DNA from: Monocercomonoides exilis PA203
Lineage: Eukaryota; Protista; Preaxostyla
Direction: 5' to 3'
NCBI GenBank assembly: GCA_001643675.2
Contig: LSRY02000039.1
Coordinates: forward strand, 806,001 to 870,000
Length of the DNA stretch: 64,000 bases
The notes beneath the pieces are model-generated. The model was not told the origin of the DNA and searched no databases. It saw only the letters and a list, made by a program, of their open reading frames with translations. Position 1 is the stretch's first letter. Each line of letters starts with the position of its first letter. This document shows positions 5,156 through 28,233 of the stretch, in pieces. The translations under genes were made by a program, and so were the position numbers.

Positions 5156-5171
5156 TGAATAATTTTTGGTG
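5156..5171. repeat. Solo right-hand TIR of the CACCAAAAATTATTCAA MITE family
   Basis: TGAATAATTTTTGGTG|TA. No matching left end was found between 3950 and 5150. Confidence 0.55.
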
Positions 5172-5338
5172 TAATTATAGTATTAAAAAAAAAATAAAAA
5201 ATGCAATAATTGATCTTGAATAAAAGAATTCTGTTCAAAGGTCTAACAAAACGTTTTGTGATTATCATTAATTTGAAATGTGTTGTGAGAATACAAACAA
5301 AATTTATTTTCATATTTCTAATCGTCCTACTCGATAAC

Positions 5339-6812: not shown

Positions 6813-7594
6813 TCTTGATAATCTGATCAATTTACCATAATAAATAGCTCATTATGTCAGATAAAAATTCAGTTGTGAATATTGTTGATTTGCTGATAAT
6901 TTCAAGTATATTAAATATTACAACGAGGATTAAAAACATAAACAAAAAAAAAAATCAATAATTCCATTATGTTTCATAATTTTTTTAATTTTTCTTTACA
7001 GATTGCTTAAAAATAATAGTTGTAAGCTCCAAAACATTAAGAAATTTAGAAAAATAGAAAAAATTAAAACTTTCAAAAAATTTAAACAATTTAGGTTCAG
7101 GAACAATATTACAAAACAATTAGAAAAAAAAAAAATCAAATCTCAATCATTGAAAACTTAATCATTCTCAAGTGAATTTCCAAACAAAATTCTGTTAGGA
7201 AAGAGAAAATGATTGCAAGTGGATGCACGTTGACAACAAAAAAGCCTTCATAAATACAAAAAAATAAAAAAAAAGAAAAGAAAAAGAAAAAGAAAGGAAA
7301 AGTTCAAAACAACAACTGTTAGTTGAGAATGACTAGGAAAAAGTAAAAAAAGAATGATAACCATCATTAACAAATAGAATTCACTATGCATTTATTCTTC
7401 ATCTTCCACTTATTCCTCTCTCAAACTGAAAAAATAAACAGAAACTGAAATAAGCAATTAAATAAACAATATCTTTTCTTAATTTATGCAAATACAATAC
7501 AATACAACACACGCAATATTCATTTCTCAAAACACACACACACACACAAAAAAAAAAAACTAAACAAATGAAACAAAAACAAAAAAATAAAAAT

Positions 7595-7662
7595 AAAAGA
7601 AAAAGAAAAAGAAAAAGAAAAAGAAAAAGAAAAAGAAAAAGAAAAAGAAAAAGAAAAAGAAA
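7595..7662 (+). repeat. (AAAAGA)n microsatellite in the 3' flank of the channel gene
   Basis: Directly visible tandem hexamer. Confidence 0.9.
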
Positions 7663-7693
7663 AATTAAAATAAAATATTTTCTGTTTTCTTCC

Positions 7694-7825
7694 TCAGAAA
7701 TATCCTGTTTCCTTCTTCTTTTTGATCTGCTTCCACTTCGGCAGCTTGTAAAACGCCTCTTTTGTCATTTCAAACACTTTCTCGAACTCTTCCTCACTCA
7801 AACGCGCTTCTTTTCTGGTTGGATC
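7694..7825 (-). other. Villin headpiece domain at the C-terminus of the channel ORF
   Basis: DPTRKEARLSEEEFEKVFEMTKEAFYKLPKWKQIKKKKETGYF* aligns by eye to villin [43 protein letters not shown]. Confidence 0.92.
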
Positions 7826-10800
7826 ATTCTCTGCTGAATTAGAACTGGAACTGGAACTGGAAGGAGATGAAACACTGGGAGAAGGAGAAGGAGAAGGAGA
7901 AGGAGAAGAAAGTGACGGAGGGGAGGAAGAAGAAGAAGAAGAAGGAGATGATGAAGAGGATGTTACAGAAGCAGACGGCTTTCCATCAGCTTCTTCCACA
8001 TTCCTCGTGCTTTCCCCTCTTCTTCTTTCTTCTTTTCCTTCTTTTCCTTCTCTTTCTTCTCTTTCTTCTTCTTCTTTCTTCTTTTTGCTAACTTTAGTTA
8101 AAGTTGCCTCTGCTCCTTTCCTTACTCCCCATTTGCTGAACACATCGTCTTTCTTCATTCCACTGTCAATCGCAAACTGCAATTTCGCTTTCTCTTCTTT
8201 CTCTTTCTCTTTCTCTTCTTTCTCTTTCTCTTCTTTTTGCTTTCTTTCTTCTTCTTCTTTTCTTAAGCGCTCTTCCTCCTCTTTCTTCTTCCTTTCCTCT
8301 TCTTCTCTTCTCAATCTCTCCTCTTCTTCTTTTCTGATTCTTTCCTCTTCTTCTCTTTTTTTCTTCTCTTCCTCTTCCTTTCTCAATCTTTCCTCCTCCT
8401 CTTTCTTTAATCTTGCTTCCTCTTCTCGTTTTAATCTCTCTTCTTCCTCTTTCTTAATTCTTTCTTCTTCTTCTTTCTTCTTTCGTTCCTCTTCCTCTTC
8501 TTTTCTCTTCCTCTCCTCTTCTTCTTTGCGTTTTCTTTCTTCATCTTCCTTTCGTTTTCTCTCTTCTTCTTTTCTGATGATTTCCTCTTCCTCTTTTCTT
8601 TTCCTTTCTTCTTCTTCTCTTCTCCTTCTCTCTTCTTCCTCCCTCCTTCTTTCTGCTTCTTTTCTTATTCGTTCTTCTTCTTCCTTTTTCAATCGTTCCT
8701 CTTCTTCTTGTTTCGCTCTTTCTTCTTCTGCTTTCTTTGCCTTCTCTTCTTCTTCTCTTCTTTTTCTTTCCTCTTCCAAAATCCTCACTTTCTCTTCTTC
8801 TTCCTTCCTCTTCCTTTCTTCTTCTTCTTCTTCTTTCTTCTTTTTCTCTTCTTCCTCCTTCCTCCTCTTTTCTTCCTCCTCTTTTCTTAATCTCTCTTTC
8901 TCTTCCTTCAGTTTTCTCTCTTCCTCCTCTTTCTTCTTTCTTTCCTCTTCCTCCTTTCTCTTTCTTTCCTCCTCTTTCTTCCTCTCTTCCTCTTCCTTCT
9001 CTCTCTTTATTCGTTCCTCCTCTTCCCTCTTCTCCCTTTCTTCTTCTTCCCTTTTCTTTCTCTCTTCTTCTTCTTTCTTCCTTTTCTCTTCTTCCTTCAG
9101 TTTTCTCTCTTCTTCTTCCTCTTTTCTCTTCCTCTCCTCTTCTTCTTTCCTTTTTCTTTCCTCTTCCTCTTCCCGCTTTAACCTTTCCTCCTCTTCCTTT
9201 CTTTTCCTCTCTTCCTCTTCCTTCCTCAACCTTTCTTCTTTATCTTTCCTTTTTCTTTCCTCTTCTTCTCTTCTCAATCTCTCCTCTTCTTCTTTACGTC
9301 TTCTCTCTTCCTCCTCTCTTCTCAACCTTTCCTCCTCCTCTTTCTTCTTCCTTTCTTCCTCTTCTTTCCTCTTTCTTTCTTTTTCTCTCTTAATTCGTTC
9401 CTCTTCTTCCTTCTTCTTCCTCTCCTCCTCTTCTTTGCGTTTTCTTTCTTCCTCTTCCCTTCTTAGCCTTTCCTCCTCTTCTTTCTTCTTCTTCTTCTCT
9501 TCTTCTCTCTTCAGATTTTCTTCCTCTTTTCTCTTCTCTTCCTTCTCCTTTCTCTTTCTTTCTTCTTCTTCCAGTTTTCTTTTCAACTCATCTTTCGCCT
9601 TCCACACATCAAACACTCTTTTCTTTTCTTCGTCTTTTTTCTTTTTATCTTCTTCTTCCTTCTTCTTGCTAAACTCTTCTTTCTCTCTTCTTTCTCTCTC
9701 TTCCTCTTCCTTTCTCTTTCTTTCTTCTCCTCTTCTCTTCTCCTCTTCCTCTTTCCTTTTTTCTTCTTCTCTTCTCTTTTCCTCTTCCTCTTTCTTCTTT
9801 CGTTTCATTTCCTCTTCTTCTTCCTTCTTCTTCATTTCATGTTCTTCCTCTTCACGTTTTCTTCTTTCTTCTTCTTCTTCTTCTCTTTCTCTTCTATTGA
9901 TCTCTTCAAGCTTCCTCTCTTTTTCCTTCATCCATGGGATAACCTTTTCCTTTTCCTTTTCCACTTTCTCTTCCTGTTTGCTCGCAATATTTCTTCTCTT
10001 GTACAACTTTTCCAGATACATTTCTCTTTCTTGCTTCAACTGCACCTTCTTCTTCTCTTCTTCTTCTCTTCTCTTCTCTTCCCTTTTCGCTTCTTCCACT
10101 TCTTCCACTTCTTTGATGCTTTCTCTTTCTGCTTCTGTCAAATCCTTCCTCTTCTTCTTCGCCATCACTTTCCTCTTCTCCACCACCTCCTTCGTCTTCT
10201 TCTTCCCTTCTGCCACTTTCAAATAGTTGAATGGGCATATCCCTCTTTCCCCTTTCCCATTCTCACACATCCACCACTGCTCTTTCTTCTCCACCAGAAG
10301 CAGCTCTTCGCCCTTTTTGATCGCCAAACACCGACTTTCTCCTGCTGGCGGCTTGAAATTGTAAAGTACCTTCACCACTACACATTCTTCTTGTTTGACT
10401 TCTTCTTTTTCTTCCTCCACTTCCACTTCTTCATTCAAATACGCTTCTCTTTCTCTCCTTTGAGCATCCTCACGTAGCTTCTTCAGCTCTTCTTTGGCTT
10501 CTGCATTCATTTTGTGCTCCCTCCAGCTGCTGAGAATAACAACTGCTGCTTCTTTCTTCTTTGCCTTTTCCTTCTCCTTTTCTTTCTTCTCTTTTTTCTC
10601 TTTCTCTTTCTTTATTTCATCTTCGGCAGCACGTTTTTGTCTGATCTTGTTTTCTCTCAATTTTGGTGAAATATTCGAAGAAGAAGAAGAAGAAGAAGAA
10701 GCAGAAACGCTTTCATCGAATTCATTGATGAATGGCTCTTGTGGTAGTTCAGGTACTTCTTCATCATCCAACTGAGGCAAACCAGGAGACGGTGGAAGAG

Positions 10801-13800
10801 AAGGAGGCAAAGAGGGAGGCAGCGAGGGGGGTAAAGAAGAAGGAAGAGGAGGAGTTGGCAGAAGTTGCGGGGGAAGAGAGAGAAGAGGAGAAACAGGCAG
10901 AGGAAGGATGGGCAGATCTTCTGACCCCTCCGGAATGGGCAAAGGCGGAGGAAGCTCTTCATTTTCAGGAGGAAGAGGAGGCGATAACAAAAGAGGGGCT
11001 GGAGGAGAAGAAGGAGAAGAAGGAGAAGAAGGAGGAGACAAGTCATCAGCAGGCGGAGGAGGAGGAGAATGAGGAGGAGAAAGAGGCAAAGGAAGCTCTT
11101 CACTCGGCTTATTTCTCTTGTCAGCCACAATTTTGCTCAAAAATGAAAAGCCCTTTCTTCCCTTTCCTCCTCCTCCTCTGCCGCCCTTGTTATCACCATC
11201 ATCATTATCATCATTATTACCTTCATTATCATCTCCTTTTCTCCCTTCTTTCTTCTGTCTCTTCTTCAGGTTCTGCTTCTCTGAACAGTATTTCTTCCAT
11301 TGTGAAAGCATTTCCCGCTGCTTCTCACTCAACCTGTCATATTCCACTTCAGCTTTCCTCATAACATTTTCTATTTCATCTGTCAGTTTCATCAGAAGTG
11401 CTGAAACATCTCCGTTTTCTCCTTCGTCAATCAGCTTCTTCCACTCTTCTTTCTCTTCCTCGCTCAGCTCATCCATCATTTGCATCAGCAGAACTTTTCC
11501 TCTTCCTTTCCATTCACCTTCATCATCTCCATCTTCTTCTCCATAATACCCTTCCTTCAGCGTCAACTGCCCCATCCCTGAGTGAATATCAACTTCTCTC
11601 TGAAGCTCCTTCAACATCCTCTCCTTCTCTTTCCTCTGCTCCTCCTCTTCTCTTCTCTTCTCTTCCTTTTCAGCTGCCTCCCTCAGTTTTCTGATCGAAT
11701 CCTGCGCTGCTTTCTGCTGCAGAGCATAGCACGTCCCCACGGGAAAGAAAGTTGGCTCCCTTTTCGCAAACGCTGCCTCCATAAAGCTCTCATCTCCGTT
11801 CAGCTCGTTCTGATTCCCCGCTGCTATGAACTCTCTCAGCGCCACAAAGAAGCCAAACAGGCGCCAAGGGCTGTGCTGCGCCTCGATGTGCCGTGTGAAG
11901 CTGAGTCCCGCTCTGTCGAGGGAAGACTGGGGCAGACCACATACAAAGCACTGCGAAGACAAGCGGGCGTCTTTCTTCTCTCTCTCTTCTCGCAGCTCTC
12001 CAAAGGCGTCGATGATGATACCAGACACGATGTTGAAGAGGATCAGCATCGTGAGCATCCAACAGAGCAGCGAGAAGACGAAGTTGCCCAGTCGGTACCA
12101 CCACGGGTTGTACAAGTCCACTGCCCCAAACACCATCCGCAGCATGAGCCACTCACCACCCGTGGGAAACTGCCCCAGCAGAGCGAGAAAACAGCTCCAG
12201 ACACTCAAACACATCGAAGGCGAGGTCGGGTCTGTGTCATCGACAACAAGTGTGCTTGAGAAGAGGATTACACCAATGGCAGAGAAGATGTACAGAACGA
12301 GGAGGAACAAGGCGCCTGTGATGAGCAGCTGCTTCAGCGGGTGGGAGATGGAGTGCATTGCCTGCATGACTGACTTGTTCTGTGAGAAGAAGTCAAACAA
12401 AAGGACAGAGTAAAAACTTGGCTCCTTCGTCATCCCCAGATACGCCGATACCAAATACAAGATCTGAATGTAGTTCTGCTTGCGGGTGAAGAAGCCCAAC
12501 AGATAGCATTTCAGATGGAACCACTTGCTCGGCACGAAATGCCTGTCCTTCTGCAGCATCTTCCGCCGCTCTGTGAAGAAGCGCTGTTGGCAGATGACAA
12601 TCGTCTCCAGCCGCAGCTGGTACACAAACAGGAGTGTGCAGAATACCACGGCCACAATGCCAAACACTTCATACGCTTTCCACTGCCCTTCCTTCACACC
12701 AGGCTCATCAGATATGAACCCTTCCTCAAACAACATGAATAAGTTCAGCGCAATCACACAGATGTCGAATAAAATACGAATCAGCAGAAGAGATTTTCCA
12801 TTCACCAGCGCCGACCATGTGCGACCAACTCCTCGTCGCACCGACCGCAGCTTCTCCTTCACTTTCTTCACTCCTCTCGACCTCACCTCTCCTCCTCCAC
12901 CACCACCACTTCCTCCGCTGCCTCCTCCTCTCCCCTCTGATGATTGGTGATATTCATCCAAGTCCTCATAGTTGTTGCTCAGCTGCTGTGTCATCATCTT
13001 CTGCGCCGTCACGTCTGTGTTGCACTCCACCGACGGCGCCACATGTCCTGCACGATATCTCAGCCTCGCAATCTGATAGTACTCTTCACAGCACGACAAG
13101 AAGTGCGAGTGCTGCTCTGCCAGCGACGGCTGCGCACACTCCACAAGCAGCTGCGCCCGCTCTGCCTCGTTTATCTGGCTGGCTACAGGGTTACGCACAT
13201 AGAAGAGCTCCTGCACAATGCCGTTACGCATCACCTCGACAGATTCGATGAAAGAAGAGTAAAACACACGAGCAGCACGGAAAGGAATGCAGTTGAAGGG
13301 CATCAGCACTCGCAGAGAGGCAAAGGATGAGGCTGAGGCTGAGGCAGAAGAAGAGGATGATGATGATGATGATGATGAAGAAGAGGTTGTCATTGACGAG
13401 AAGTCTTGTTGTTCAGTCAAAAGAAAAGAGGGATGGTCACAGATTGGTGAAATCAACTGCATAAACAGCTGATTGCTTCGTTCTGCATCAGAAATGTTGT
13501 ATCTACTCAATTCAGTTCTATTTGAGCGATTTTTGTTTCTATCATTGGCAAATGGATTGAATGCAATATTATTATTGTTGTCAGAAGAAGAAGAAGAAGA
13601 AGAAGATTCCTGACTAACCGAAGACGCAAATGCAGTTGCTGCATTCAGCGAAGCAGCAGAGCCATTCGCCAAGCTTGTGACAGTCGAAACCCCCGCCCCG
13701 AAGTTGTTCATCAGCGACTTCCACGCAATCAGCATCTTCACCGCAGTGTTGTGCATGTCCTTCTTCAGCGCCGGGATCTCATGCACCGACCTCTCTCGGC

Positions 13801-16800
13801 TAAGCACAAAGTACTCGTTGATCCTCCTCCCCACACTCTTCAGCAGAGCTGTCTCGTTTGCCAGCTGCACCGCATTCACCACACCTGTGGGGCCTTCGAT
13901 GCAGCCGAGAAGCAGGTTCGTTGCTGCTGCCACGACTGTTCTTTCTCCATCTGCCTCTCTCAGAGTGTCTCCCACACTCCACTCACGCTGAATGAAAGAA
14001 CGAGAGAAAGATTTGTTGTCTGAAATCTGCTGCCACCGAGGCACTTTCAGAGCAACACAAACAGCTCCTTCGACTTCTCTCCTTTTTTTCTCTTCGGATT
14101 TCGACAGGTTCTCCAGAGAAAGCTTTTTCACAGCGTCTTTTGCAAAGCCAAGATGCAGCTGCTTCCCCAAAAACGAAGCAATTTTGCCTTCCTCCTCGCC
14201 GTCATTGCTTCCCCCGTTCATCCCATCTTCCTCCTCCTCCTCATTATCCTCCTCTTCCCCTGCATTCTCCATCAGCCCTCTCTTTGGAAGCGCCACCGAC
14301 AAGTCCACATCTGTCTGCATTGCCCACAGCCTCGACAAGCACTCTCTCCCTTGTGGTGTGCCTGTTATGCACTGCTGGTTGCCCACGCAGGGTCCTTGCA
14401 GCACTTCAGTGAGGGTGCGGATGGCGACAGTGATGTGAACCAAGTGGCGGAAGATGCCTGAGTGAGTGATGAGCGGCTCAGAGGCAAAAGAAGGGATAGG
14501 CATCTTCTCGGTGGTGGAACATTGAGGGTTTGGCTTATTGGTGGGGGTGTTTGAGGTAGAAGAAGATGAAGAGGAGGAGGAGGAGGAGGAAGAAGAAGAA
14601 GAAGAAGATGATGATGATGAAGACGGATGAGGAGGTGGTGGTGGAGGTGGAAGTGGTTTCAATGAATGAGAAGACTGTTTATCCATGTTATTTAAAATCT
14701 CATTCACAGCCTTCTCGATCACCTCCTTGTAGTCTTCCTGTTCTATTCCATGTGGCACAGAAGGAGGTAGAAGCGATGTCAGATACTCGATGATGATCTG
14801 CAGCAGGTTTATGCTTCCTTCTCCCTTCTGATCTCTTATCAAGTTCTGCGACTGCAAGTTGTGCCCTTCGCACAGCTGCGAAATGAACGAGAGAATTGCC
14901 TCGACCACAATCACCCTCTTTGACACTGTCTCAAACGTCTCCAGCTCTCCTTCCATCTTCTCCCAGATTCTGTTCAGGATCTGCTCTCGCCTCTCTTTCT
15001 CTGACTGCTGAGAAGAGGCAGCTGTTCTGTTTCTCACTTGCAATCCCTTGTCTTTTTCATTCCCTCCTGTTAACACTGTCTCCCCATCTGCTTTTGACAG
15101 TGTTTGTGAGAAATTAATCACCTCCTCCACCATCGCTGAGCGTGCAGCTGCCCCCATTCCCTTTGTCCACCATGGCTGCTGTCTGTTAATCTGCGTCTGG
15201 CTGACGAGCACACGTGCAATAGACAGCAAAACAGACTGTTGCCTCTGTCTGTGCGATGTGACATGGAAGAGAAGGGCATCTTCGGCCAGATGGCGCTGAA
15301 GAGACAGCCGCACCAGTGTCCTTGTGGAGGCAGACATCGGTGCAGATACAAAGAGAAAGAGAGAGGAAGAGCCAGAGGGATACAGAGAAGATGACAGCAC
15401 AGTTGCTGATGAGTCCAATGAGCGATACCGCTGAAGCTGCTGGTTGGATGTGCCATGCTCCTCCTCGTTGAATGTTTGCCATCCATCGGATTGATAGAGA
15501 ATGTCCCTCCTTCTCATTCCCCGCTGTGCCAGTTGCTCGTCCTGCAGCATCAGCCTCTTCAGTGCTGGATAAACATTCTCCACATTCAATGTGCCGTGTG
15601 CTTCGAATCCTTCAAACAGGAATGCCAGCTTCTCTCTAGCCATCCGCTCCATCAGAGCAGTCTGGTCGCTTCGTGCCTTTTTCTCGTTATTTTCTCTTCC
15701 TCCTCTCTGGCTGGTTGACTGCAACACACTTTCTCCTTCGTAATCATCAGACAGATCGCTGTAATAGTCATCATAGTCTTCATAATCAATGTCGGAGACT
15801 TCGCTGTAATTGCTGTCCGACGAATTCGACTCATCTGAACTGCTATCACTTTCGCTTGAATCACCTTGCCTGTTGGCATCTCCATCATCGCTCATTAAAG
15901 CATCCACTTTCCTCCCTTTCCCTTTCCTCCTCTCTCTTCCTTTCTCCTTCTCCTTCTCCTTCTCCTTCGTTTCCTCTCCAGCCAAGCACTTCAGCACTCT
16001 CTTCTGCACCTCGTCGTTTCCTTCGTTCAGCAGCGCCTGCAGCACTTTCATCCGCATCGTCTCAATTTGCATATCTCCTCTCTGCTCGGCCTTCAGCACA
16101 GCTTCTGTCACCCCGCTCTGCCCCAGCTGATCCTGCCTCTCTTTCAGAGGCTCAGTTTCTGGCTGTGGTGTGGAAAAGGAGAAAGGCAAACGTACGAGGA
16201 AGAAGAAGAAGTTCAGAATGGACAAGATGAGAGAGCGAGTGAGAGGAGAAGAGGAATCTGTTGAAGAAGAAGAGGAAAAGCTAACTGAAGAAGCAGAAGA
16301 AGATGATGATGAAGTAAAATGATTATTCTTTCCCTGATGCAACATGAGTTCAATCGAAGTGTGAGCAACGTTCGTGTCCACATCAAAAGCAGACAGCGGA
16401 GATGGGTTGAAGGCCTTCAAAAGTGCTGTTTTGGAAGGCGGGGCAGGCGGATTCAAAATACGCGCAATGTGCGAAAGGAGCGGGATGCTGCCATTGTCAA
16501 TGCTATTATTGCTGTTGTCATTCTCCGAGTTATCTGCAATCTGTGAAAGAATGAAGAACGAGTTGTATTCTTCAGTTTCTGTCTCGGATGAGAGAGCTTT
16601 TTGGAGGTGGAGGCAGTAGAGTTCCCAGAACTTGATGGCCTCTTGGGAGGTTTGGTCAGAGGAAAGAGAAAGTGCAGAGGTGGGTGAAAGAGAAGGAGGA
16701 GGAGAAGGAAGAGAAGAAGAAGAAGAAGAAGAAGTTGAAGATTCATAAGAATGAGAAGAAAAAGGAGAAGATGACTGTACAGTTTGAGAAAAAGCAAAGT

Positions 16801-19800
16801 TGAGACGCTGCAAAATGGCAGCAGAAGGAGGATATGCCAAAGTCGAAGGAATAAACGAGTTCTTCACAAAAGACTGGACAGAAGTCATTAATGAAGAAGA
16901 TGTCGATGATAATCTCAATTTGTGTGCAGACGCATAAAACTGATTCACCAGAGGCAAAGAATGACTCAGAGCATCTTCCAGCCCAGTAGCAGCATTATTC
17001 GCATCAGCAGCAATTTTATTGTCCTTTCTGAAGACATCCAGATAAACTGCACAATCATTCAGCTTTTCACCCATTTTCTCTGCTTCTTCTGCTATTGCGT
17101 GCCATTCTGCCTCATTTCCTTTCATTTTCTCTCTGATCGCCTTCAGATCTCTACTCGCACTGGCTTCGTTTCCTTCCTTCACTTTCTTCAGCTGCTGGGA
17201 CAAAAGCTGTTGTTGTCTGTCCATTTCTTCTGCTTCACTTCTCAATGTGCTGTTCAGCTGCTGTGTTGCCATAAGAACAGACGGAAGCAGAACCTCCTTC
17301 GCAAACACCGCTTTTGCTGTCTCCAGTTTGATTGCTTGAGGTTGGAAGGAGTGAGAATAAGAAGAGGAAGATGAGGAAGAAGAAGAAGAAGAAGATGATG
17401 ACATGGGAACAAAGCAACTGCAAATGTCAGAAAGCAACTGCATTGAATGAATCAGCTCATTTGATTCTTCTTCTTCATTATCATCTTTTCCTTCTTTTTC
17501 TTCTCCTCTTCTATTTCCTTGTTTAACATTCTCAGAGAACAGTGAAGTTGAGAACAAACTATTTGAGCAGCTGAGATAGGCGTGTGTGAAAAGATGCAAA
17601 AGTGAGGAAAGAAGCAAAAATGCTTCAGAAACAGAAAGAGAAGGTATCTTTTTCTGAGTTATTGTCGAATTAACAGAAGAAAGAGAATCATTTGAGTGCG
17701 ATGACGATGAAGTTGATATCAACGATGTAGCAAATGCTTTGAAACTATAACTTTTCTTCGCTTCATTATTCGCTTTAGAATCCTCTCTATCCCTCTGTCC
17801 CTTTTGTTTCATTCCCTCTGAAGATCCCAACCCAATCTTTTCCTTTCCCATCTCCTTCTCCTTCTCCTTCTCCTTCTCCTTCTCCTTCTCCTTCTCCAAC
17901 ACATTCAACACACACGCGATGCATTCATTCAGAATCCGCAGTGGAAACAGCAGCTGCACCCGCTTCTGCCCTTCTTTGTGCTTCGAGTGGCACACATCTC
18001 CCAAAAGACCCAGCAGATCAGCCAGCACAGCCGGAGTGAAAGTGGAAAGGGAAGACAAAAGTTCTTCTTCCGGAAGCGTCTTTTCGGAGAAATTATTTCG
18101 GCCTACTCGGAGAAATAGGACTGTGCGAGCGGTTAAAAGGAAAGTTTGTCCGGAAAAGGAGCGGAGAAATAGCCGTAGGATTGCAGACTGACAGAACAGA
18201 CGAGCTTGTGGGGTGATGACTGAAAGGAGGGAGGAAGATGAGGAAGATGAGGAAGATGAAGAGGATGAATATGACGCAGAATCAGTTGTACAGTGGAAGG
18301 AAGAAGCAGAACACGAAACACACAGCACTGACAAAAGCGTCAAATATGTCTCAATACATCTTGGTCTTGGGTCATCCAGCAACGCTGCTATCACAGAAGC
18401 AATTGTTGATAGAGAAATTGTCGATTTTTTTGCTCCTCCTTCGATCGCAGAATTACTAAGATCTTCTTCTCCTTCATCTTCGTCGTTATCATTATCATTA
18501 TCGCCTTCTCCTTCTTCATTCAAATTGTCTGATGAGTTAAGAGGAGATTGTCCATTAGAATCATCAGCATCTGCCTCGTATTCATTTGCACCGTTTCTTT
18601 GTGCATCATCTCCTTCAGCAAAGCCATTCAACCTTCCACTCCTCTCAATCTCCTCTTCTTCATCGCCTTCCCCTTCATCTCCTTCTCCTTCTCCTTCTCC
18701 TTCTCCAGCATCATCTGAATCACTTCCGCTGCTGCTGCCGATGTTAAAGAGAGAATTTGGGGCTGAACAGAAAATAGGCACGAGAATCTTGCTGATTGAG
18801 ACGTTGCATGGAACAAGCTCCACAAACGAGGGGATGAATGGAATGACAGACAAAGCAGCAGATGAAGAGGAAGAGAAGAAAGAAGAAGAAGAAGAGGAAG
18901 ATGCAGATGAAGATGAAGATGACAACGAAGAAGAGAAAGAGGACGAGGTTGAAGAAGAAGCGAGAGAAGGAGAAAGGGAAGGAGAAGCGGAAGCAGATAA
19001 TGAAGACGAGAGGGATGTGTTTGATAAAAGGCTGGCCAGGGCGTCTGTGCAGAGAGAGAAAAGAGGGCGAAGTGGAGGGCAGAAGGGAATGGAGAGCAAA
19101 TGGCACAAAAGAGAAGGGAAGTTGAGGAAGAGCACCAATTGCAGTGTGCCTGGAGATATCGCAGAGGAAGCAGAAATGTGCTTGGCTGCTGAGATTATCT
19201 GGTCAAACTCTTCTTTTGGAGAGAGAAGAGAAGAAGAAGAAGAAGAAGATGATGATGATGATGATGAATTGCTTTGGCTCTGCCACGTATCCCATGAATC
19301 GAATGCATATGACTTCTGAGTCCTTTTGTTTGGAGCTGCTGAAAGTGCAGCCAGCAGAGAGCGAGAAGGCGCAGGAGCGCCATGAACAACCAAGATGAAC
19401 GAGGCGACTGCAAACATCAGCTCATTCAGCGCGTCTGTCTGCGCTTTGCTCACTTCCTTTGTGTTCATCGCATTCTTCACTATGCTCCACCGGGTGCTTT
19501 TTTTGCTCTCTCCGTTTTGGCTTCCTTCTTCTCCTTCATTGTTTTTCCTTTCATTCGCATCGGTTTGTGATTGAGAAGCACCAGACAGTGCAGTATTCAT
19601 CTGCTGCGATGTTGCTATGCTCCTTCTTCTCTTCTCCATCAGCAACAACGATGACATTCGCCTATGAAGCGTCCTCCCACTTCTTCCCAACGTCCCTCCT
19701 CCATTCAGCACTTGATTCTCACTCTTAAATCCTCCTTCATTCATTTTCCTTCCTTCTCCCTCTTTTCCCACTTCTCCACCTTTTCCTTCCTTTCCCTCTG

Positions 19801-22800
19801 TTCCTTCCTCTCCTTCCTCTCCTTCCTCATACCCCCACACTGCTGCCATCTGACACACCACACTCAGCACCGTCTGGCTTGCCATGCACCCTGCCAGCTC
19901 CTTCAGCACATTCCACGCCTTCCAACTGTCTCTGCGGGCTATCAGCACAACCTGCGGAAGCTGCAGACAGAGCGAGCGAAACGGCTGTGTTACGAGGAAG
20001 AAGAGCGAAAGGGCGCTGGTGTGGAGTGTGCTGTTCTTTGAGCACAGAAGAGAGGAAAGGGCAGCAGGAAGACGAGTGCCTGTGAAGTGGGTGAGAGACA
20101 TTTGAGACAGCGTTTCTCTCACTTTTGTGGGGATGAAGGAAGTTTCAATTGCATTGCTGATTGAGCTATTAATTGAACTGCTGATTGCATTGTGTGTGGA
20201 AGTTTTGTTTGCATTCCCATTCGCATATCCTGCGTGTTTTGCTGTCTGCAAGCAATCAAACATGACAAAGGCAAGTCTTTCAGAGAGATTCAGCTGCTCA
20301 ATCAGCAAAAGAAGGTTGAGCACTTTTTTCTTCGTCTCAAGGATGGCTTCTTGGACCTGCTTGGGAAGAGGAAAACGAGGCGAATCTGAAACTCTTTTCA
20401 CTTTCTTCTTGAAAATGGAGCCGATCAAAGAGGATATATGCGAAAAGACGGAGGTCCCAAAGGAAGAAAAAACGGATTTTGAATTGCCTTTTTCATTGTT
20501 GGTTTCATTTCCTTCTCCTCCTTCTTCGTCTCCTTCTTCATCGCTGTCATCTCCTTCTTCATTGCCATCCAGTCTCTTGCTTTCTCCTCCTCCCTCTCTT
20601 CTCCTCTTATCCTTCTTCTTCCCTTTCCCTTTCTCCCTCGCACCCAATGGTGCATAATCCTGCTGCAGAAACGCAACCATCTCAGTCAGCGAACGAGCCA
20701 CAAACATTTCATCCAACATGCTCAAATTGCACACGCCACAGCTCAAAAGAGAAGAAAGAATCGAAATGCACTCACAAACAAAGGAGAGTTCGGTGTTGAT
20801 GCGCTGGCTGATGCGGGAGAGGAGAACGGGGGAGAGCTTGGAGAGGGAAGGAGGAGAGGTGGGGATGGGGAAGGGAAGAGGAGATGAGGAAGAGGAAGAG
20901 GAAGAGGAAGAAGAGGAGGATGGAGAGAGAGAAGAAGATGATGATGATGGTTGTAATGCTTGTAATGAAGAATACGAACTTGTTGATTGAGATCGAATCT
21001 TAGCTGCTGCTATGATGAGTGCGAGTGTGTCTGGAACTGATGACACCTCACGAAGCAGAAACAAGAAGGCTGATTTCTGAACAGAAGAAGAAGAAGAAAT
21101 AGAAGAAGAAGATGATGATGATGAGGAGGAGGAGGAGGAAGAGGAAGAAGAATTTGAAGAAGAATAGAATTTCGAATAATACAAGCTCAATTTGTCTTCA
21201 TCTGGCTTATCCCAAAAGAACAGAGGGACGTTGTTGATTGTGTCGAGATGGCTCCTCGTAAAAACATTGCTATTTTGTTTGCCTTGCTTCTTCAACAATC
21301 CAACTTCCCATTCAAAAACCTCATCCTTCTTCCATTTCTCAATCTTCGCATTCTCTTCTTTCTCTTCTTCATTATTTTCTCTCTTTCTTTTCTTTTCTCC
21401 TTCTTCTTCTTCTTCTTCTTCTTTGTTTGTTTGCGATAGCGTGTCAATATAAAGTGCAACCATCAGTTGTGTCAAACGCGACCGGAGAATCGGAGAAAAT
21501 GCAACAGAAGCGACAAGAGAAGAAGCATCTTTCGTGTGAGGATTGTTGTTAGGGTTGCTCTTTTGAGAAGGAGAAGAGGAGGAAGAAGAAGAAGAAGCTG
21601 ATGCTGATGATGAATTTTGCTGTTTATTTGAACGTTTAGTGTTCTTATTTGTTGAATTCTCATCATCATCATCTTCTTTTTTATTCATTGCCTCCAATCC
21701 AACATCTCCATTCAGCCAATGTTTCAGCATTTTAAAGGGGAAAAGATTTTTCAGTGTTCGAGACAAAACAGGATTCTTTGTTTTTGCTATGCTCAGCACA
21801 AACATTGAGAGAAAAGCAGAAGCAGAAGAGGAAATGTCACAGGATGTTTTGAAGGCGTCTAAGGAAGAAATGAAAGAAGAACGATGAGAGGAGGAGAAAG
21901 AAGAGGAGGAGGAAGCAACAAAAGAGGAAGAGGAAGAAGAAGATGAGGAGGAAGAAGAAGAATGAAGAGAAGATGAGGAGGAGGTGAAGAGGAGAGGGGT
22001 GTAGAATGGAAGAGGATATTTTTCACATGACATGATTGGGAGTGTGGAATGAGATGGTTTATGAGAAGAAGAAGAAGAAGGAGAGGAAGAAGAAGGACGA
22101 TGAGGCGGCGGTGGAGGTGGTGGAGAAGAAGAAGAAAAAAAATCTTTCGGCCGAAATCCATTTGATATTCTTTGAAGAGAAGCAGCAGGTGCAAAAGACT
22201 GGATAGCAGCATGTCGAAAGAGAGGGAAGACAAACAGAGAGGAAGGCAAACAGAGAGAAAGAACCTCAGAAAAGTTGGTGGCAAAGGAAGAGACGAAAGA
22301 AATGGCAGAGGAAAGGTCAGAGGAGAAGATGATAGGAGAAGAGGAAGAGGAAGAAGAAAAAGAAGAAGAAAGAGAAGAAGAAAGAGAAGAAGATAATGAA
22401 GAAGAAGATGATGATGATTGTGATTGTGAAAGAGCAGAAGAGAATACTGAAGTTCTTGCCGCAGTCTGTAGGACAGATGCTGAGTGAGCAAAAGAAGAAG
22501 GAAGCGAAAATGAGGCAGAAGAAGAAGAAGAAGAAGACAGTTCTGAAGAAAACTTATAAGCCGCAGGCATCGGAGTGGTGAATGCATCGTAGAAACAGTC
22601 GATGATTGGGTGGAAGTCGTCGAAAGCAGAATAATTCGAAGGCAAAATGATGAAACGCGAATTGGCTGACCAGCTTTCAAAGAGCAGGTCGCCTTTGTTT
22701 GATGGGAGAGAAGAAGAAGAGGAGGAAGAGGAAGAAGAAGAAGAGGGGGAATAAAGCAAGTCATTTCCATGGGCCTCGAAGGAGACAGATGTGGAAGTGC

Positions 22801-25800
22801 TTAGATCTTCGGATGAAGATGGCACATTTAATGATGATGATGATGATGATGATGTTTTCGTTTCTTTCATCTCTTTCCCTTTCTCTTTCTCCTTCCTTTT
22901 CTCCTTCCCCTTTTTCTCCTTCTTCTTCTCCTTCAAACAATGCGAATATCTCTGCAGTGTCCTGTGCACAAGCATCCTACTTCCCCCCAGAATAGTCAAA
23001 ATACACAGCACTTTCTGCAGCAGAAGAGCAGAAAACGTTCTGATGGCATTCATCTTCCTCTGCTCCCTTTGAGAAGAAGGCATATCACACTCAGTCAGAA
23101 GAGATAAGAGGCTGCCGGCAAGCGAGGAGAAGGTGTAAAGGCTGGGGATGGGGCGGTGCTGGCGGATCTGGCGGAGGAAGCGGATGGTTTCGGAGGAAAT
23201 GGAAGAAGAAGAGGAAGAAGAAAGAGAAGAAGAGGGTGAGGAGGAAGAGAATAACGATGATGAAGTGTCATAAACTTTCCCCTTTTCATTCCTCGTCCCT
23301 TGTTGTGCTTCTTCTTCTTCCATTTCTTCTTTCTCCTCCTTCTCCTCCATCATTTTGCCCATTGCTTCTGCCAAAATGTTCTTCTCCCAAAGTGAAAATG
23401 ACAGCACAGCCTGCCGAGAAGCAAGAGAAGACGACAAAACAGCAGAAATTGCATCGAAATATGGCAGCATCAGAAGCAGCTGGGAAGGAAGGAGTGCAAG
23501 TGGGGTGTCAGATATGCTTGGCCATTCACTCTCGATGGATGCTTCGACGAAGAAGGAGGAGGAAAAGAAAGGAGAAAAAGGAGAAGAAGAAGAAGAAGAA
23601 GAGAAGGAGGAAGAGGAAGAGGATGAAGAAGAAGAAACAGAAGAATGAGAATGTTTTGAAATGAGTTTAGAATTCTGCGACGTGGATGAAATGACAGATA
23701 AATTTGACATGTTTTGTGGATGTGAATTTGACATGAAATGGAGAGGGAAGAAGGGAGGTGTGCAGGAGCGAGAGAAAAGAGAGCGAAGGGTGCTCTTCAA
23801 AAGCATATCTGAAGAAGGAAGAGGAGGAGGAGGAGGAGGAGGCTGTGATGAGGGAGGAAGAGGAGGAAGGTTTGAATGATTTGACAATGAGGAGGAGGAA
23901 GAAGAGGAAGAAGAAGTGGAAGAAGAGGAAGAAGCTGAAGTGAATGGTGATGATGCTAACTGATTTGAAGATGATTTCTGTTTATTTCCTTCTTTTTTGT
24001 TGCCCTTTCCAAACGTTTGTGCTTTTAATCCTTTCGAAGTTGGTTTCATTTTCTCTTCTTTCTCTTCTCCTTCTCCTTCTCCTCCTTCTCCTTCTCCTCT
24101 CCTTCTCCACTTCTCCCCCTGTGCTGCAACAAGATGCCACTCAGCCACAGCCAGCATTGCTTCCCTCATCTTCTCCATTGACACTGCTGCTTCTGTCGCT
24201 GCTGCTTCACACCCAACCACAAGATGAGCGATGCAGCGGAGGCAGAGAGAGAAAGAGGTGAGAAGAAGGAATGTGGCAGAGAGAAGGAGGGGTTGCGCGG
24301 AGGAGGAAGAAGAGGAGGAAGAGGAAGAAGAAGAAGAAGATAAAGATAAAGATGATGATGATGATGATGATGATGACACAGAAAGAGAAGAAGATTCAGA
24401 TTCTTCATTTGAACTTGATTGAAGTGGAATGTCGAAGTGTGATGACACAAAAGGAACCATCTCTTTGAACACTTTTTCGATTTCCTCAGAAAACTTCACT
24501 TTTTCAAGCACATTCAAAATTATCTTCTTTTCTTCCTTTTTCTTTTCTTTTCTTTCTTTCTTCTCGTTCTTCTCGTTCTTCTTCTTCTTCTCATTTTCTT
24601 TCTTTTGGAGTAAACTCAATTTCTCATTCATCACATGCACTTCTCTTATGATAGCCAATATGTCGCTCAATACACCCTGTGACAGCAGCACTTTCTGCCT
24701 CTGCGAAAAGGGGAAAGAAGAAGAAAACGAGTCAAAAGAAAACAAAGAAACAGAAGAAGAAGAAGGAATATCTGCATCATTTCTGTGTGCTTTCTTTCTT
24801 TTGCGTTGGGATGAGGTTTCATCTGATGATTCGGTTGAATCATCATCATCTTCTTCTTCTTCTCTTTCTCCTTTTTCTCTCTTTTTATTCTTTCCCCCTC
24901 TCTTCAAACTATCTTCTTCTTCAAATTTTTCTTCTTCTTCCTCCTCCTCTTTCTCTTCCTCTTCCTCTTCCTCTTCCTTCTTCTCCTTCATTTCCCTCAA
25001 AACTCTCAACACCTTTTTCACTCTCAGTCTTTCAGCCTCTGGTTTCCTCAGCCTTCTGTTCCTCTCCATTTGTGTGTGGTGGAGGAGAGGGAGAGGAGGC
25101 AGCGTAGCTGAAGGATTGAGAAATGTTAAGAGAGAAGCAGTTACTTGGCACAGATCAGGAGAAAGAGAAAGGATAATTGAGAGACGATTGACGCATGAGT
25201 CATAGAGGGTTTTGATGCCTTCATCATCTTCATTGTTGTCATCTTCATTTTCTCCTTTTTTCCCTTCTTCTTTGCCTTTGGCTTTTCCTATCTTTTCTCC
25301 TTCTTTTCCGTTCTTGAAAATCTCTTCTTCTTCTTCTTCTTCTTCAGAATTCACGCCAACGCCATTCCATTCTCTTCCTTCTTCCACACACTCCTTCATC
25401 TGCCTCACAAGAGATGCAACATGCCTCGTCTCTAAGCAAAGAGCCATCCATTGCTCAGGAATCACATGGAACGTCAAAGGAGTGCAGTTGTTTTGCTGAA
25501 GAGAAGATTGACTTGAAGAAGAGGAAGAAGAAAAAGAGGAAGAAGAGGAAGAAGAAGAGGAGGATGATAAAACCTCATCCATTCCCGAGTGATGTTGTGA
25601 AGATGATAAGCAGAGCATTCCAACAGGTGAAGCATTGAAAGAGACGCTTGAGGAAAGAGATTGTTGTGCAAGACGAGGCGGAACTGGCATCGAAGGCAGA
25701 AGATGCTCACAGACAGAAGATGATGCCTTATGAGGCAAAAGAGATGAAGATAAAGAGGAGGAGGAGGAGGAGGAGGAAGGAGAATAGGAAGAGGAAGAAG

Positions 25801-27114
25801 CAGAAGAAGAAGAAGATGATGATGATGATGACAACGATGATCCAAGCAGTGCTGTTAATGTATTGTTTGAGCGAGTGTTGCGCACTTGCTGCATAGAAAC
25901 AGCACACCCTGTGACTTCATGCACCAAAACGAAAGAGTCTCCAGACATCGCCACTTGCCTCCTGCTGTTTGGCCGCATCTCATTCGCAAATTGCTCGGAA
26001 GACGGAGCATCTGCTGCAGATTGATGTGCAATTTCAGCTGAACACACCTCAAAAATTGTGTTTCGGCGGAGCTGGTTTACTTTGCCCTGCTGTTCACAAA
26101 CAGATGTGTTGAGTCTTTTAACCTCTGATTCCAAAGCTTCAATGGAACATTTCGCTTCCTCTTGCTCCTCTGCTTCTGTCGATTGTTTCTTCGTCATCGT
26201 CTCCGTTGTTGTTATCGCAATGTCATTCTTCAAATTCTTCTTCTTCTTCATTTTTAATTTTATTTTCATTTTCTTCTTCAGTTTCCTCAATTTCTCAGTC
26301 AAATTCTTCCTTTTCGTAAGCAGCGCTGCCAGTTCTGCTTCCTCCTTCCACAGTGGAAGCAGCTCCAGACACTTCGGCACCTGTTTGATTGAATCTTTCC
26401 TCTTCTCTCCATTCAAAGCAGAAGATGTTGTGTGTTTGCTGTTTGAAGCCAAATATTGAGCAGATGACGAAGAAATTTTTGATGGAAGAGAAGAAGAAAG
26501 AGAAGATGAAGCAGAAGCAGAAGAAGAAATGGCAGAAACCGCAGAAAGAGAAGTTGCTTGCTTTGGAGCAGCAGAGCCATCAGCAGCCTTCAGCCGCCCA
26601 ACAAAATACGACAAGTCCCTCGCTTTCCCCTCTTGTGCCTGTCTAAACTGCTCTTCGTCAAAACCCACATGCTCGTCGGTGCTTCGGAATCGCAGCCGGA
26701 TCCAATCTCCGCATCTGATTTCATTCTGCTCTTCGCTTTCTTCTTCTGATTCTTCTTCTTCTTCTTCTTCTTTTGCTTTGGCTTCTGCTTCTTCTTCTCT
26801 TTCATCTTCTCTTGACCTTCCCCTCCTTTTCATCTTTTCTTCCCTCTCGTTTTCATCCTCTTCCTCTGCCAGCAAAGCATTTGGCCTCTCTTCCATTTCT
26901 GTTCCCATCCAACTTCTCTTGCAAGCACCGTATTTTGTGCCACAAGCAGCAGAAGAGCCAAACAGCTCTTTTCTTTCTCGTCTGCTCACTTTCTCCACCA
27001 CAAACGCATCCCCTGTGCTGAACGGCATGCTCTGAGCAGCGGATCCAGAAAGCTTTTTGACACAAAGTTTTCTCTTTGTTCGGTGCAAAGGTGATGATTT
27101 CACTTTCACAATTG

Positions 27115-27146
<32 letters not shown>

Positions 27147-28233
27147 GAAAAGAAAAGAAAAGAAAAGAAAAGAAAATAAAGAAAAGAAAAAATAGTCAAA
27201 AGGAAAAGGAAATGAAATGAAATGAATCAGATGGAGAGGTTTTTTTAAAAAAAAAAAAAGGATATCTAAAGAATATCAAACTTTCAGTGCAGATAATTCC
27301 ATTAGATGAATTTGCTGTCAAAGAAATGATGGATCCAGACACAATAACCTCTTCAGCTTGCTTTTCTTTGCTTTTTCCTATTTTAGTCTTTCTTTCTGTT
27401 TCTTTACTACTCGTGTCGTAGCTAACGCTGCTAAAGATTTTCATCCGCCACTCTTTCTTCTGCGAAACAGAAACTCCTGTTCCTCGCTCATCGACCTTTT
27501 GCACAAACACACAATCCATCAAAAGTTTATTGATGAACCAGATAAATTATTATAAAAATGAAAAAATGTTTTTTGATGCACTGTTGCACACCGCAAGGAA
27601 TAACCCAGTAAGCTTATGTCGCAGTACAACGCGATCATTCTTTGTTATAATCATTCCTTTGAACATCTGCTGATTTACACCTTCAATGAACCACAAAACT
27701 AAAATAAAAGTCAAACAATATCATTGAGAATAAAAATAACAATAAAAATAATTATTGCAAAAGAATGTCATCCAACCTTCAGGCGAAGAGTTTTCACAGC
27801 GCTTCATAAACGGCATGATTTCTCCTGTTTCCGAATTAAATCGTTCTTTGCGTGCTGCAAGGCAGCTCCCGGTAACTACACACTAAATTTTTTTTAAAAA
27901 AAATACATATTCAACAAATTAAGCATTAATGCTAACCTTCAATGTCACTGCGCTACCGAATTTTAAATGTCTTTAAAAGTCTTTATATTGAAATATTTCA
28001 TACACCAATGAAAATACATACTTCTCCGCTCCATTTCGTGTTTCTTGTGCAGGGATGATGCGCCACAAATTGTACTTCGAGTCTTCATCAACGTAGGGTT
28101 CTGCTTCAGAAATCAGGTGCTGAATCGACAATAAATGGTGATCCGCGTTTAAGACGCCTGGCTTCCCTCCCTTCTTTGGGACAGTGATTAAACGTACTAT
28201 TGTGTAGTAATCAATGCATTGATTGGCACTCAT
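7694..28233 (-). CDS. Giant IP3 receptor/ryanodine receptor-family Ca2+ channel with a C-terminal Pro-rich, SH3, SAH and villin-headpiece extension (about 6 exons, last exon ~19.4 kb)
   Basis: Spliced 5' exons give beta-trefoil/MIR motifs (HLKFGSAVTLK; LWFIEG...DRVVLRHKLTGLFLA). RIH-associated motifs LCEGHNLQSQNLIRDQ...LTEVLQGPCVGNQ, and SVEVMRNGIVQELFY. Multi-TM region, S6 LFNIVSGIIIDAFGELRE, and Zn-binding CFVCGL...HIEAQH. GT-AG exons read at 28233-28022, 27970-27937, ~27883-27778 and 27698-27592; exon 5 and the start of the last exon (~27103) are approximate. Confidence 0.9.
8185..10100 (-). repeat. E/K/R-rich single-alpha-helix-like coding repeat (about 600+ aa)
   Basis: Iterated EEEERKRK/EEEERLRR blocks with i,i+4 charge alternation and almost no Pro/Gly. 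Confidence 0.8.
10212..10385 (-). other. SH3 domain within the channel ORF
   Basis: VKVLYNFKPPAGESRCLAIKKGEELLLVEKKEQWWMCENGKGERGICPFNYLKV carries the ALYxF-like, L.i.KGe, WW and G..P.NY SH3 motifs. Confidence 0.9.
11700..12800 (-). other. IP3R/RyR transmembrane channel domain plus C-terminal Zn-finger linker
   Basis: Several hydrophobic helices, pore helix CLSVWSCFLALLGQFPTGGEW, S6 IIIDAFGELREE, and CFVCGL...FTRHIEAQHSPW...ELNGDESFM...FFPVG. Confidence 0.9.
27116..27200 (+). repeat. (AAAAG)n microsatellite in the last intron of the channel gene
   Basis: Tandem pentamer. It accounts for the spurious FFSFL start of the 6501-aa ORF. Confidence 0.85.

Follow-up and report, generated by a model that had tools for sequence, protein, structure and literature searches.

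A giant IP3R/RyR-superfamily channel gene of Monocercomonoides exilis that runs in frame into an SH3 domain, an ER/K rod and a terminal villin-type headpiece

The window analysed here, 64,000 nucleotides of contig LSRY02000039.1 of the oxymonad Monocercomonoides exilis PA203 (assembly GCA_001643675.2, positions 806,001 to 870,000 of the forward strand), carries on its minus strand a giant ion-channel gene related to the inositol 1,4,5-trisphosphate and ryanodine receptors (IP3R/RyR). Positions 7694-12800 of the window, which are the main subject of this text, hold the last ~1,700 codons, about the last quarter, of its 6,501-codon frame. An initial annotation, made from the letters alone, had read this part as an IP3R/RyR-type Ca2+ channel whose open reading frame (ORF) continues well past the usual end of the family into a set of cytoskeletal domains, and had interpreted the product as a candidate actin-tethered channel of an architecture not known to have been described. 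Most likely, the fusion is real, lineage-specific and indeed undescribed. The fuller interpretation, in which a single M. exilis gene encodes a channel subunit of ~6,500 residues that is extended at its C-terminus by a cytoskeletal-linker module and thereby tethers itself to actin, is given slightly better than even chances.

Composition, stop counts and landmarks were computed on the whole ORF, which was also used in pairwise blastp comparisons with paralogue and Blattamonas proteins, and the later database searches drew on positions 7694-8011 and 8063 upward. Because of its RIH_assoc domain, its pore and the zinc finger that follows S6, the protein is best placed in the IP3R/RyR superfamily. 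In a phmmer search of the PDB, the core from RIH_assoc onward matches IP3R1 (E 6e-29) and RyR1-3 (about 1e-24 to 1e-21), and the alignment to the solved channels spans S5, the pore, S6, the CxxC...H....H zinc finger and the ..FP.. motif. The landmarks quoted in the initial annotation are all found: CFVCGL starts at residue 5084, the C2H2 finger is formed by C5084, C5087, H5104 and H5109 (its CFVCG...H....H pattern aligns with IP3R1 residues 2606-2640), and FFPVG, at residues 5151-5155, closes the conserved core. A feature-based search of the ESM Atlas returned solely Ion_trans/RyR clusters, with scores of 0.76-0.78. Homopolymer runs swell the genes of this whole family.

Animal IP3 receptors (ITPR1-3; PDB 3jav, 6mu1, 7lhe) share with the M. 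exilis channel the RIH_assoc domain, the six-transmembrane (six-TM) pore, the post-S6 C2H2 zinc finger and a charged helix past the ..FP.. motif, although they have ~2,700 residues against ~6,500. RyR1-3 share the giant size class, RIH_assoc, the pore and the zinc-finger C-terminal domain, whereas no SPRY, RyR-repeat or EF-hand domain is recognised by Pfam in the M. exilis protein. A further difference lies at the C-terminus, where ~1,346 residues follow FFPVG, compared with a few tens in the aligned IP3R1. RyR chains stop within ~5 residues of the matched region that ends at FFPVG, with essentially no tail past the core.

This extension contains, in order, the coiled-coil-like, polyproline and SH3 segments that the initial annotation had listed (Table 1). 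The charged helix or coil directly after the core, including its 'GD.S.LL..L..E' motif, is common to the M. exilis paralogue on contig C16 and to KAK2958687.1 of Blattamonas nauphoetae, and a three-way alignment of these two with the present gene (on the contig here called C35) reveals a Pro/Ser-rich region common to all three after the coil. Since the three have the same post-core helix, motif and Pro/Ser region, the extension starts inside an ancestral Pro-rich tail or past it, with no visible gene boundary. The sequence 'GFSFLSKIV', comparable to ..SFFKRIFK and ..PFSRMFKRK in relatives, was considered as the ancestral C-terminus and rejected, as the shared Pro/Ser-rich region follows it. 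The SH3 domain, matched by SH3_1 at residues ~5610-5656 when a short piece was scanned, keeps the hallmark positions VLYNF (ALYDY-like), WW and PFNY (PxNY), and shares 33-47% identity with the SH3 domains, four in all, that two 2xSH3 genes of the same genome encode. It is left unfolded in an AlphaFold2 (AF2) model of residues 5601-5900, which was built from a single sequence and is hence uninformative on the SH3. Past the Pro-rich tract and ahead of the SH3 domain, at 10544-10591 (residues ~5537-5552), the stretch AAVVILSSWREHKMNA is loosely IQ-motif-like (I/L...R....K), with no Pfam match.

The E/K/R-rich helix of about 600 residues was recovered with little change, at 607 residues. With its 87% of Glu, Lys and Arg, ~10% of hydrophobic residues and no heptad hydrophobic core, the rod is predicted to be an ER/K single alpha-helix (SAH) and not a canonical coiled coil. 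The AF2 model is consistent with this, as it contains helices at residues 5689-5814 and 5823-5899 with predicted local distance difference test (pLDDT) values of 84-96 and, over the initial 160 residues of the rod, a single break. If wholly helical, the rod would be ~90 nm long (0.15 nm per residue). The ER/K helices of myosin VI and X, INCENP and drebrin share the composition, the scarcity of hydrophobic residues and the predicted long isolated helix; to our knowledge, the ~600-residue rod is several times longer than those characterised. Helices of this kind are semi-flexible and act elsewhere as spacers, leashes or constant-force springs (PMC4183817, PMC4571873), whereas the M. exilis rod is predicted to join a channel to an actin-binding head. 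The Ser/Pro linker ahead of the headpiece is likewise present as described.

The terminal headpiece is present at the very C-terminus. VHP (PF02209) is recognised in the last 35 residues with E 7e-16 and 58.3 bits against a cut-off of 27 (E 1.7e-15 in a repeat scan); a scan of 1,935 residues missed it, and it was found on a short piece. Among PDB entries it is closest to the headpiece of villin-4 (E 2e-12), with chicken villin HP67 as a further match (E 5e-10). Aligned to 1qqv and 5vnt, the sequence follows the pattern F..VF....F..LPKWKQ..KKKETGYF, in which the three core Phe, LPxWKQ, the basic patch and the terminal aromatic are all kept, and the last residue of the protein is this terminal Phe, directly before the stop. 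The same positions are kept in the headpieces of villin, villin-4, supervillin and dematin. Villin, dematin, supervillin, ABLIM and the plant villins likewise end in a headpiece that follows a flexible linker, but what precedes the headpiece in the M. exilis protein is an ion channel instead of gelsolin repeats or LIM domains. The villin-like gene of M. exilis also has Ser/Pro-rich sequence right before a short headpiece.

Table 1. Positions of the channel gene, its domains and related M. exilis genes. Coordinates are those of the window unless a contig is named.
Feature	Position	Residues	Strand	Evidence and remarks
Main giant exon of channel gene	27199..7694		minus	Stop-free frame, 6,501 codons plus TGA stop at 7694-7696 (ORF list)
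Putative 5' exon	27282..27519		minus	ATG at 27519; ends GAA A, then gt at 27281-27280; read from sequence
Putative GT..AG intron	27103-27281		minus	179 nt, AT-rich and pyrimidine-rich, ends ag; in-phase join to 27102
RIH_assoc (PF08454)	14744..14917	4095-4152	minus	Pfam E 5e-13, 49.3 bits against cut-off 28.5; also in own-genome scan
Six-TM Ion_trans with pore	11981..12763	4813-5073	minus	Pfam E 2e-6 to 3e-7
Selectivity-filter position GQFPTGGEW	12149-12175	5009-5017	minus	IP3R1 has GGGVGD there
Post-S6 linker domain	11735..11950		minus	Alignment to IP3R1 residues 2606-2680; C2H2 zinc finger and FFPVG
Charged helix/coil	11093..11734	5156-5369	minus	Position of IP3R1 C-terminal helix; 'GD.S.LL..L..E' motif
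Pro-rich tract	10730..11092	5370-5490	minus	22 PxxP in residues 5340-5520, 0 flanked by R or K
SH3 domain	10205..10378	5608-5665	minus	Pfam SH3_1 E 1.5e-7, 31.4 bits against 22.9; SH3_2 E 1.2e-6
ER/K rod (predicted)	8159..9979	5741-6347	minus	607 residues, 87% E/K/R, ~10% hydrophobic, one Pro, one Gly
Short motif FAIDSGMKKDDVFSKWGVRKG (DVFSKWG)	8114..8176	6342-6362	minus	Recurs in C6 gene; no Pfam family
Ser/Pro-rich flexible linker	7820..7984	6406-6460	minus	Composition
Villin-type headpiece, C-terminal subdomain	7697..7819	6461-6501	minus	Ends ...LPKWKQIKKKKETGYF (KETGYF), stop next
Giant IP3R/RyR-like paralogue	C16:1090266-1102571		plus
Giant IP3R/RyR-like paralogue	C36:~1799354		minus
Giant IP3R/RyR-like paralogue	C58:~1897441		minus
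Giant IP3R/RyR-like paralogue	C10:~467309		minus
Giant IP3R/RyR-like paralogue	C12:~972939		minus
Giant IP3R/RyR-like paralogue	C17:~1258666		plus
776-aa ORF	C5:1000391-1002721		minus	N-terminal region, Pro-rich (FH1-like), Ser run, ~330-aa ER/K rod, Ser-rich linker, VHP
1,593-aa ORF	C6:965551-970332		plus	Motif at least 8 times between ER/K rods and Ser runs

The continuity of channel and tail is central to any interpretation, given that a channel gene and a separate gene for the Pro-rich, SH3, rod and headpiece parts might have been mis-joined by assembly or polishing, or might be read as separate transcripts from an internal poly(A) site and promoter. Beyond FFPVG, the frame holds 1,346 codons (residues 5156-6501) with no in-frame stop, as the initial annotation had stated for about 1,300, whereas the two alternative frames contain 55 and 60, so that the open frame through the tail exceeds chance expectation. 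This holds segment by segment: the counts in frame and in the two other frames are 0/16/26 for the coil, 0/0/9 for the Pro-rich tract, 0/5/3 for the middle part, 0/2/1 for the SH3 domain, 0/22/14 for the rod, 0/4/5 for the linker and 0/2/2 for the headpiece, which thus keeps the frame of the channel on the far side of a 1.8-kb rod. Introns and intergenic DNA of M. exilis have a GC content of ~25-28% (PMC8767320), in agreement with the composition of the window. Since no 80-nt window of the tail falls below 27% GC, no hidden intron or intergenic region is seen between channel, SH3 and headpiece; within the ORF, such windows are limited to the first 120 nt and to three Lys-rich coding patches far upstream. 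The assembly was made from Oxford Nanopore Technologies (ONT) long reads with Canu, Nanopolish and Pilon, with an N50 of 1,379,369 (PMC8767320), and comprises 101 contigs and 82.3 Mb. In view of the long reads and of the finding that the rod, though of low complexity as protein, contains no exact DNA repeat of at least 50 nt, a mis-join inside it is unlikely. The Pro-rich region shared with C16 and Blattamonas also leaves no obvious place for a gene boundary. On the other side, a stand-alone gene with Pro-rich, rod, linker and VHP parts exists on contig C5, so that the second gene type is real; ONT data are error-prone in purine-rich low-complexity DNA; and the continuity across the joins is that of the assembly sequence. 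Taken together, an artefact of this kind is judged very unlikely.

The tail sequence is also transcribed. Four metatranscriptomic runs from one study, of 60-65 million letters each, contain 53-59% of the sampled words of positions 7400-12900. Only 26% of this stretch belongs to the channel part and the 3' flank, and at least ~45% of the tail words must therefore be present in the RNA-derived contigs. Contaminating DNA is a poor explanation for these words, because runs so small could hardly assemble an 82-Mb genome.

The reading of the ORF as one uninterrupted coding frame was upheld for the tail and the core, and not for its beginning. The first ~33 codons are pyrimidine-rich, with 16% GC, and are probably the end of an intron, the coding part starting from about 27102. 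A splice from 27282/27281 to 27103/27102 (ag/TG) would attach the putative 5' exon and yield a protein of about 6,548 residues; the exon found no support in a PDB search or when the paralogue was used in tblastn. Further upstream, the minus-strand ORF 27550-27714 contains a stretch ..NDRVVLRHKLTGLFLAV.. that is, by eye only, a candidate MIR-like sequence. At the other end, AT-rich non-coding DNA lies 3' of the TGA stop. Pentanucleotide (TTTTC)n runs occur at ~7600-7670, just past the stop, and again at ~27120-27190 in the putative 5' intron, on the minus strand.

The gene belongs to a family within M. exilis. A six-frame search for the pore found seven giant IP3R/RyR-like frames of 4,102-6,510 residues, on C35, C16, C36, C58, C10, C12 and C17, with very different filter sequences (TGGEW, TGGKW, AGGAE, SPGD). 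Five of the paralogues end roughly 90-125 residues past the FP.G-type motif, and C16 ends 291 residues past it, after a coil and a Ser/Pro-rich stretch; the tail with SH3, rod and headpiece is found only in C35 among the seven. The parts of the tail recur in other genes. VHP is encoded three times in the genome, in a gelsolin/villin-like gene on C69, in the present channel and in the 776-aa ORF on C5, in which Pfam recognises VHP only. This last gene, which lacks channel and SH3, repeats the module order of the channel tail, with VHP preceded by a Ser-rich linker, an ER/K rod and, before these, a Pro-rich tract. Similarly, the 1,593-aa ORF on C6, also without channel or SH3, repeats AIDTGFSKSDVFSRWG.RKG between ER/K rods; the motif AID[ST]G[FM].K.DVFS[RK]WG[VIL]RKG occurs in at least 8 copies there and once in the channel tail, and no Pfam family matches it. 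The tail thus appears to have been assembled from modules used elsewhere in the M. exilis genome. A single donor gene was looked for and none could be identified: the closest counterparts are the two 2xSH3 genes for the SH3, villin and C5 for the headpiece, and C6 for the short motif.

A tail confined to one lineage could also be a recent read-through into a neighbouring gene, real but neutral or already decaying, in giant genes that are swollen by low-complexity insertions. The homopolymer runs that inflate the whole family fit such a history, as does the branch of C35, the longer of the C35/C16 pair. However, the SH3 and VHP domains score above the Pfam cut-offs with their hallmark residues intact, the headpiece is ~70% identical (by eye) to the other two of the genome and is therefore not a very recent copy, and the 4-kb tail is still free of stops and present in RNA data. 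The chances of a neutral or decaying fusion are accordingly considered slim.

Outside M. exilis, relatives of the channel were found without the tail. A full HMMER pass over 1.84 billion representative proteins, with residues 4567-5666 (pore to SH3) as query, gave 3,233 matches, none of which reach into the SH3 domain. The best are KAK2958687.1, KAK2960546.1, KAK2951702.1 and KAK2964532.1 of Blattamonas nauphoetae, followed by proteins of Paratrimastix, Pygsuia and Gefionella. Among 154 retrieved proteins (the best 150 of the 3,233 plus four from a second search), phmmer finds no match to the SH3, headpiece, coil or Pro-rich pieces, and the ten longest C-terminal tails contain no Pfam domain. 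A homologue search with region 4380-5665 returned four RyR-type proteins, two of them from crustaceans, and one with the tail region returned a single fungal Sla1-like SH3 protein. Quick trees with support from the Shimodaira-Hasegawa-like approximate likelihood ratio test (SH-aLRT) group C35, C16, KAK2958687.1 and KAK2960546.1 in one clade (99, pore region), and a longer alignment separates (C35,C16), with 88, from the two Blattamonas genes, with 97. These oxymonad relatives share the filter FPT[GQ]GEW, but end about 90-290 residues after the FP.G motif without SH3, rod or headpiece; the genes for KAK2958687.1 and KAK2960546.1 stop shortly past the core, with no SH3- or VHP-like sequence in the 10 kb downstream of either. 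Duplication and fusion are tentatively dated after the split from Blattamonas, tentatively because C35 is long-branched and of deviant composition. The claim of an undescribed architecture fits these results, since neither the paralogues, the Blattamonas relatives, the 154 proteins nor the literature searched contained it: nothing relevant was found that links Monocercomonoides to ryanodine, inositol-calcium signalling or such channels, and none of the best-ranked literature matches for villin headpieces and IP3Rs in protists contained the term 'villin headpiece'. Regarding the public model of KAK2958687.1, which is annotated as 'IP3R', its residues 19-118 match NTF2/NXT export factors (E 2.5e-5), which suggests that in this model an adjacent NTF2-like gene has been merged with the channel.

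Solved IP3R and RyR channels are tetramers in which the chain exits S6 on the cytosolic side and the zinc-finger domain is cytosolic. By homology to these structures, the tail is expected to be cytosolic and present in four copies. In the proposed mechanism, a gene duplication in the Monocercomonoides lineage would have been followed by the gain, at the cytosolic C-terminus of the C35 copy, of a module in which a Pro-rich tract and an SH3 domain are followed by a ~600-residue ER/K helix, one DVFSKWG motif and a Ser/Pro linker that leads to the terminal headpiece. The channel would conduct, presumably, Ca2+ out of an intracellular store, and its tetramer would present four tails, that is, four weak F-actin-binding heads on semi-flexible spacers with a reach of up to about 100 nm. 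Acting together, the four heads would bind actin filaments by avidity, so that the channel and the store membrane would be held at actin-rich sites, while the SH3 domain and the PxxP tract might recruit further partners or engage each other. Such a link would be the covalent equivalent of those made by KRAP or 4.1N in animals. There, 4.1N is one adaptor that connects IP3Rs to actin. Animal IP3Rs are also tethered to actin by the adaptor KRAP (PMC8302619), whereas any actin link of the M. exilis channel would be covalent. Villin has been kept in M. exilis and myosin is absent, according to its genome paper (PMC6759080).

From the identities of the domains, we infer that the headpiece binds F-actin and that the channel is tethered to actin without the adaptors used by animal cells, and also that filament bundling or mechanical gating might follow. 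Of the original interpretation as an actin-tethered channel, the architecture is therefore borne out at the level of sequence, and the function is what these domain identities would imply.

A stronger form of the mechanism would have the tail transmit force, with actin tension acting through the rods and the post-S6 helix to gate or license the pore, in what would be a mechanosensitive store channel. In solved IP3R and RyR structures, the S6/zinc-finger linker region couples the cytosolic domains to the gate, and the alignment to these structures joins the tail directly to the helix that follows this linker. SAH domains can act as constant-force springs (PMC4183817), and in animal cells the 'licensed' IP3Rs are those that KRAP tethers (PMC8302619). 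However, SAH helices unfold at low force, a disordered linker of 55 residues lies ahead of the head, and a single headpiece binds actin weakly, all of which makes a sharp transmission of force unlikely. M. exilis also has no myosin that could generate tension (PMC6759080). Force transmission is thus seen as distinctly improbable.

The main partners of the tail could also be other than actin. The rod and the DVFSKWG motif might bind microtubules, such as those of the axostyle and preaxostyle, or other partners, with SH3 and PxxP as a signalling scaffold and the headpiece as an accessory. The SAH domain of INCENP binds microtubules directly (PMC4571873), the oxymonad cytoskeleton is mostly microtubular with a reduced actin toolkit (PMC6759080), and DVFSKWG, a motif of no known function, is also found in the C6 protein with its ER/K rods. 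Against this, the headpiece is the only tail domain with a well-defined ligand, its conserved positions are kept, and it lies at the extreme C-terminus past a flexible linker, like matching solved headpiece proteins. Binding mainly to such other partners is, on this evidence, decidedly unlikely.

A number of observations weigh against the actin-tethered channel itself. MIR, which the initial annotation had expected beside RIH_assoc, Ion_trans, SH3_1 and VHP (all four above their Pfam cut-offs), was not detected by Pfam in the first 4,000 residues, and neither were RIH, RYDR_ITPR or the Ins145_P3_rec/IP3-binding core found in animal IP3Rs; phmmer gives no PDB match for the first 700 residues. 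Low-complexity insertions and divergence may hide N-terminal domains. The filter reads PTGGEWL, unlike the GGG[VI]GD of the superfamily (TGGEWL against GGGVGD in IP3R1). Since no ligand-binding core was detected and the filter differs, the name 'IP3R' is not warranted for this protein, whose membership of the superfamily stands. The headpiece is limited to the short C-terminal subdomain: HP67, the 67-residue form, has an N-terminal subdomain that is missing here, the alignment to HP67 begins at residue 24 of that chain, and Ser/Pro linker lies upstream. Isolated 35-residue headpiece subdomains fold alone and still bind F-actin, though more weakly. The words found in RNA speak for transcription of tail sequence and not for one transcript that spans the channel, the SH3 domain and the headpiece. 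Support for the (C35,C16) node is moderate, and C35 has a long branch and a deviant composition. Finally, no tail-bearing orthologue was found among the 154 retrieved proteins or the Blattamonas relatives, and since none is known, conservation offers no argument for function.

What is new here is a known channel family with an apparently lineage-specific cytoskeletal tail, on the basis of one genome. The seven giant IP3R/RyR-like genes of M. exilis are themselves a previously unnoticed family: the text of the genome paper does not contain 'IP3', and its passage on Ca2+ transporters names only exchangers and P-type pumps (PMC6759080). In its boldest form, the actin-tethered channel would be wired to actin by four ~90-nm constant-force springs, such that actin sets its position, its clustering or even its opening. 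This would be a natural single-polypeptide version of KRAP 'licensing', independently evolved in a eukaryote without myosin or mitochondria, and as a whole this form is considered unlikely.

The placement of IP3R/RyR channels determines which Ca2+ signals are possible, and in animals it is set via actin adaptors such as KRAP and 4.1N. If the proposed mechanism is true, the tethering of these channels to actin would have evolved at least twice. The M. exilis channel would then also be a minimal natural system in which to ask whether tethering alone immobilises or licenses channels, with a spacer whose length is encoded in the gene and can hence be varied experimentally, and it would bear on how Ca2+ stores are organised in a cell that has neither myosins nor mitochondria.

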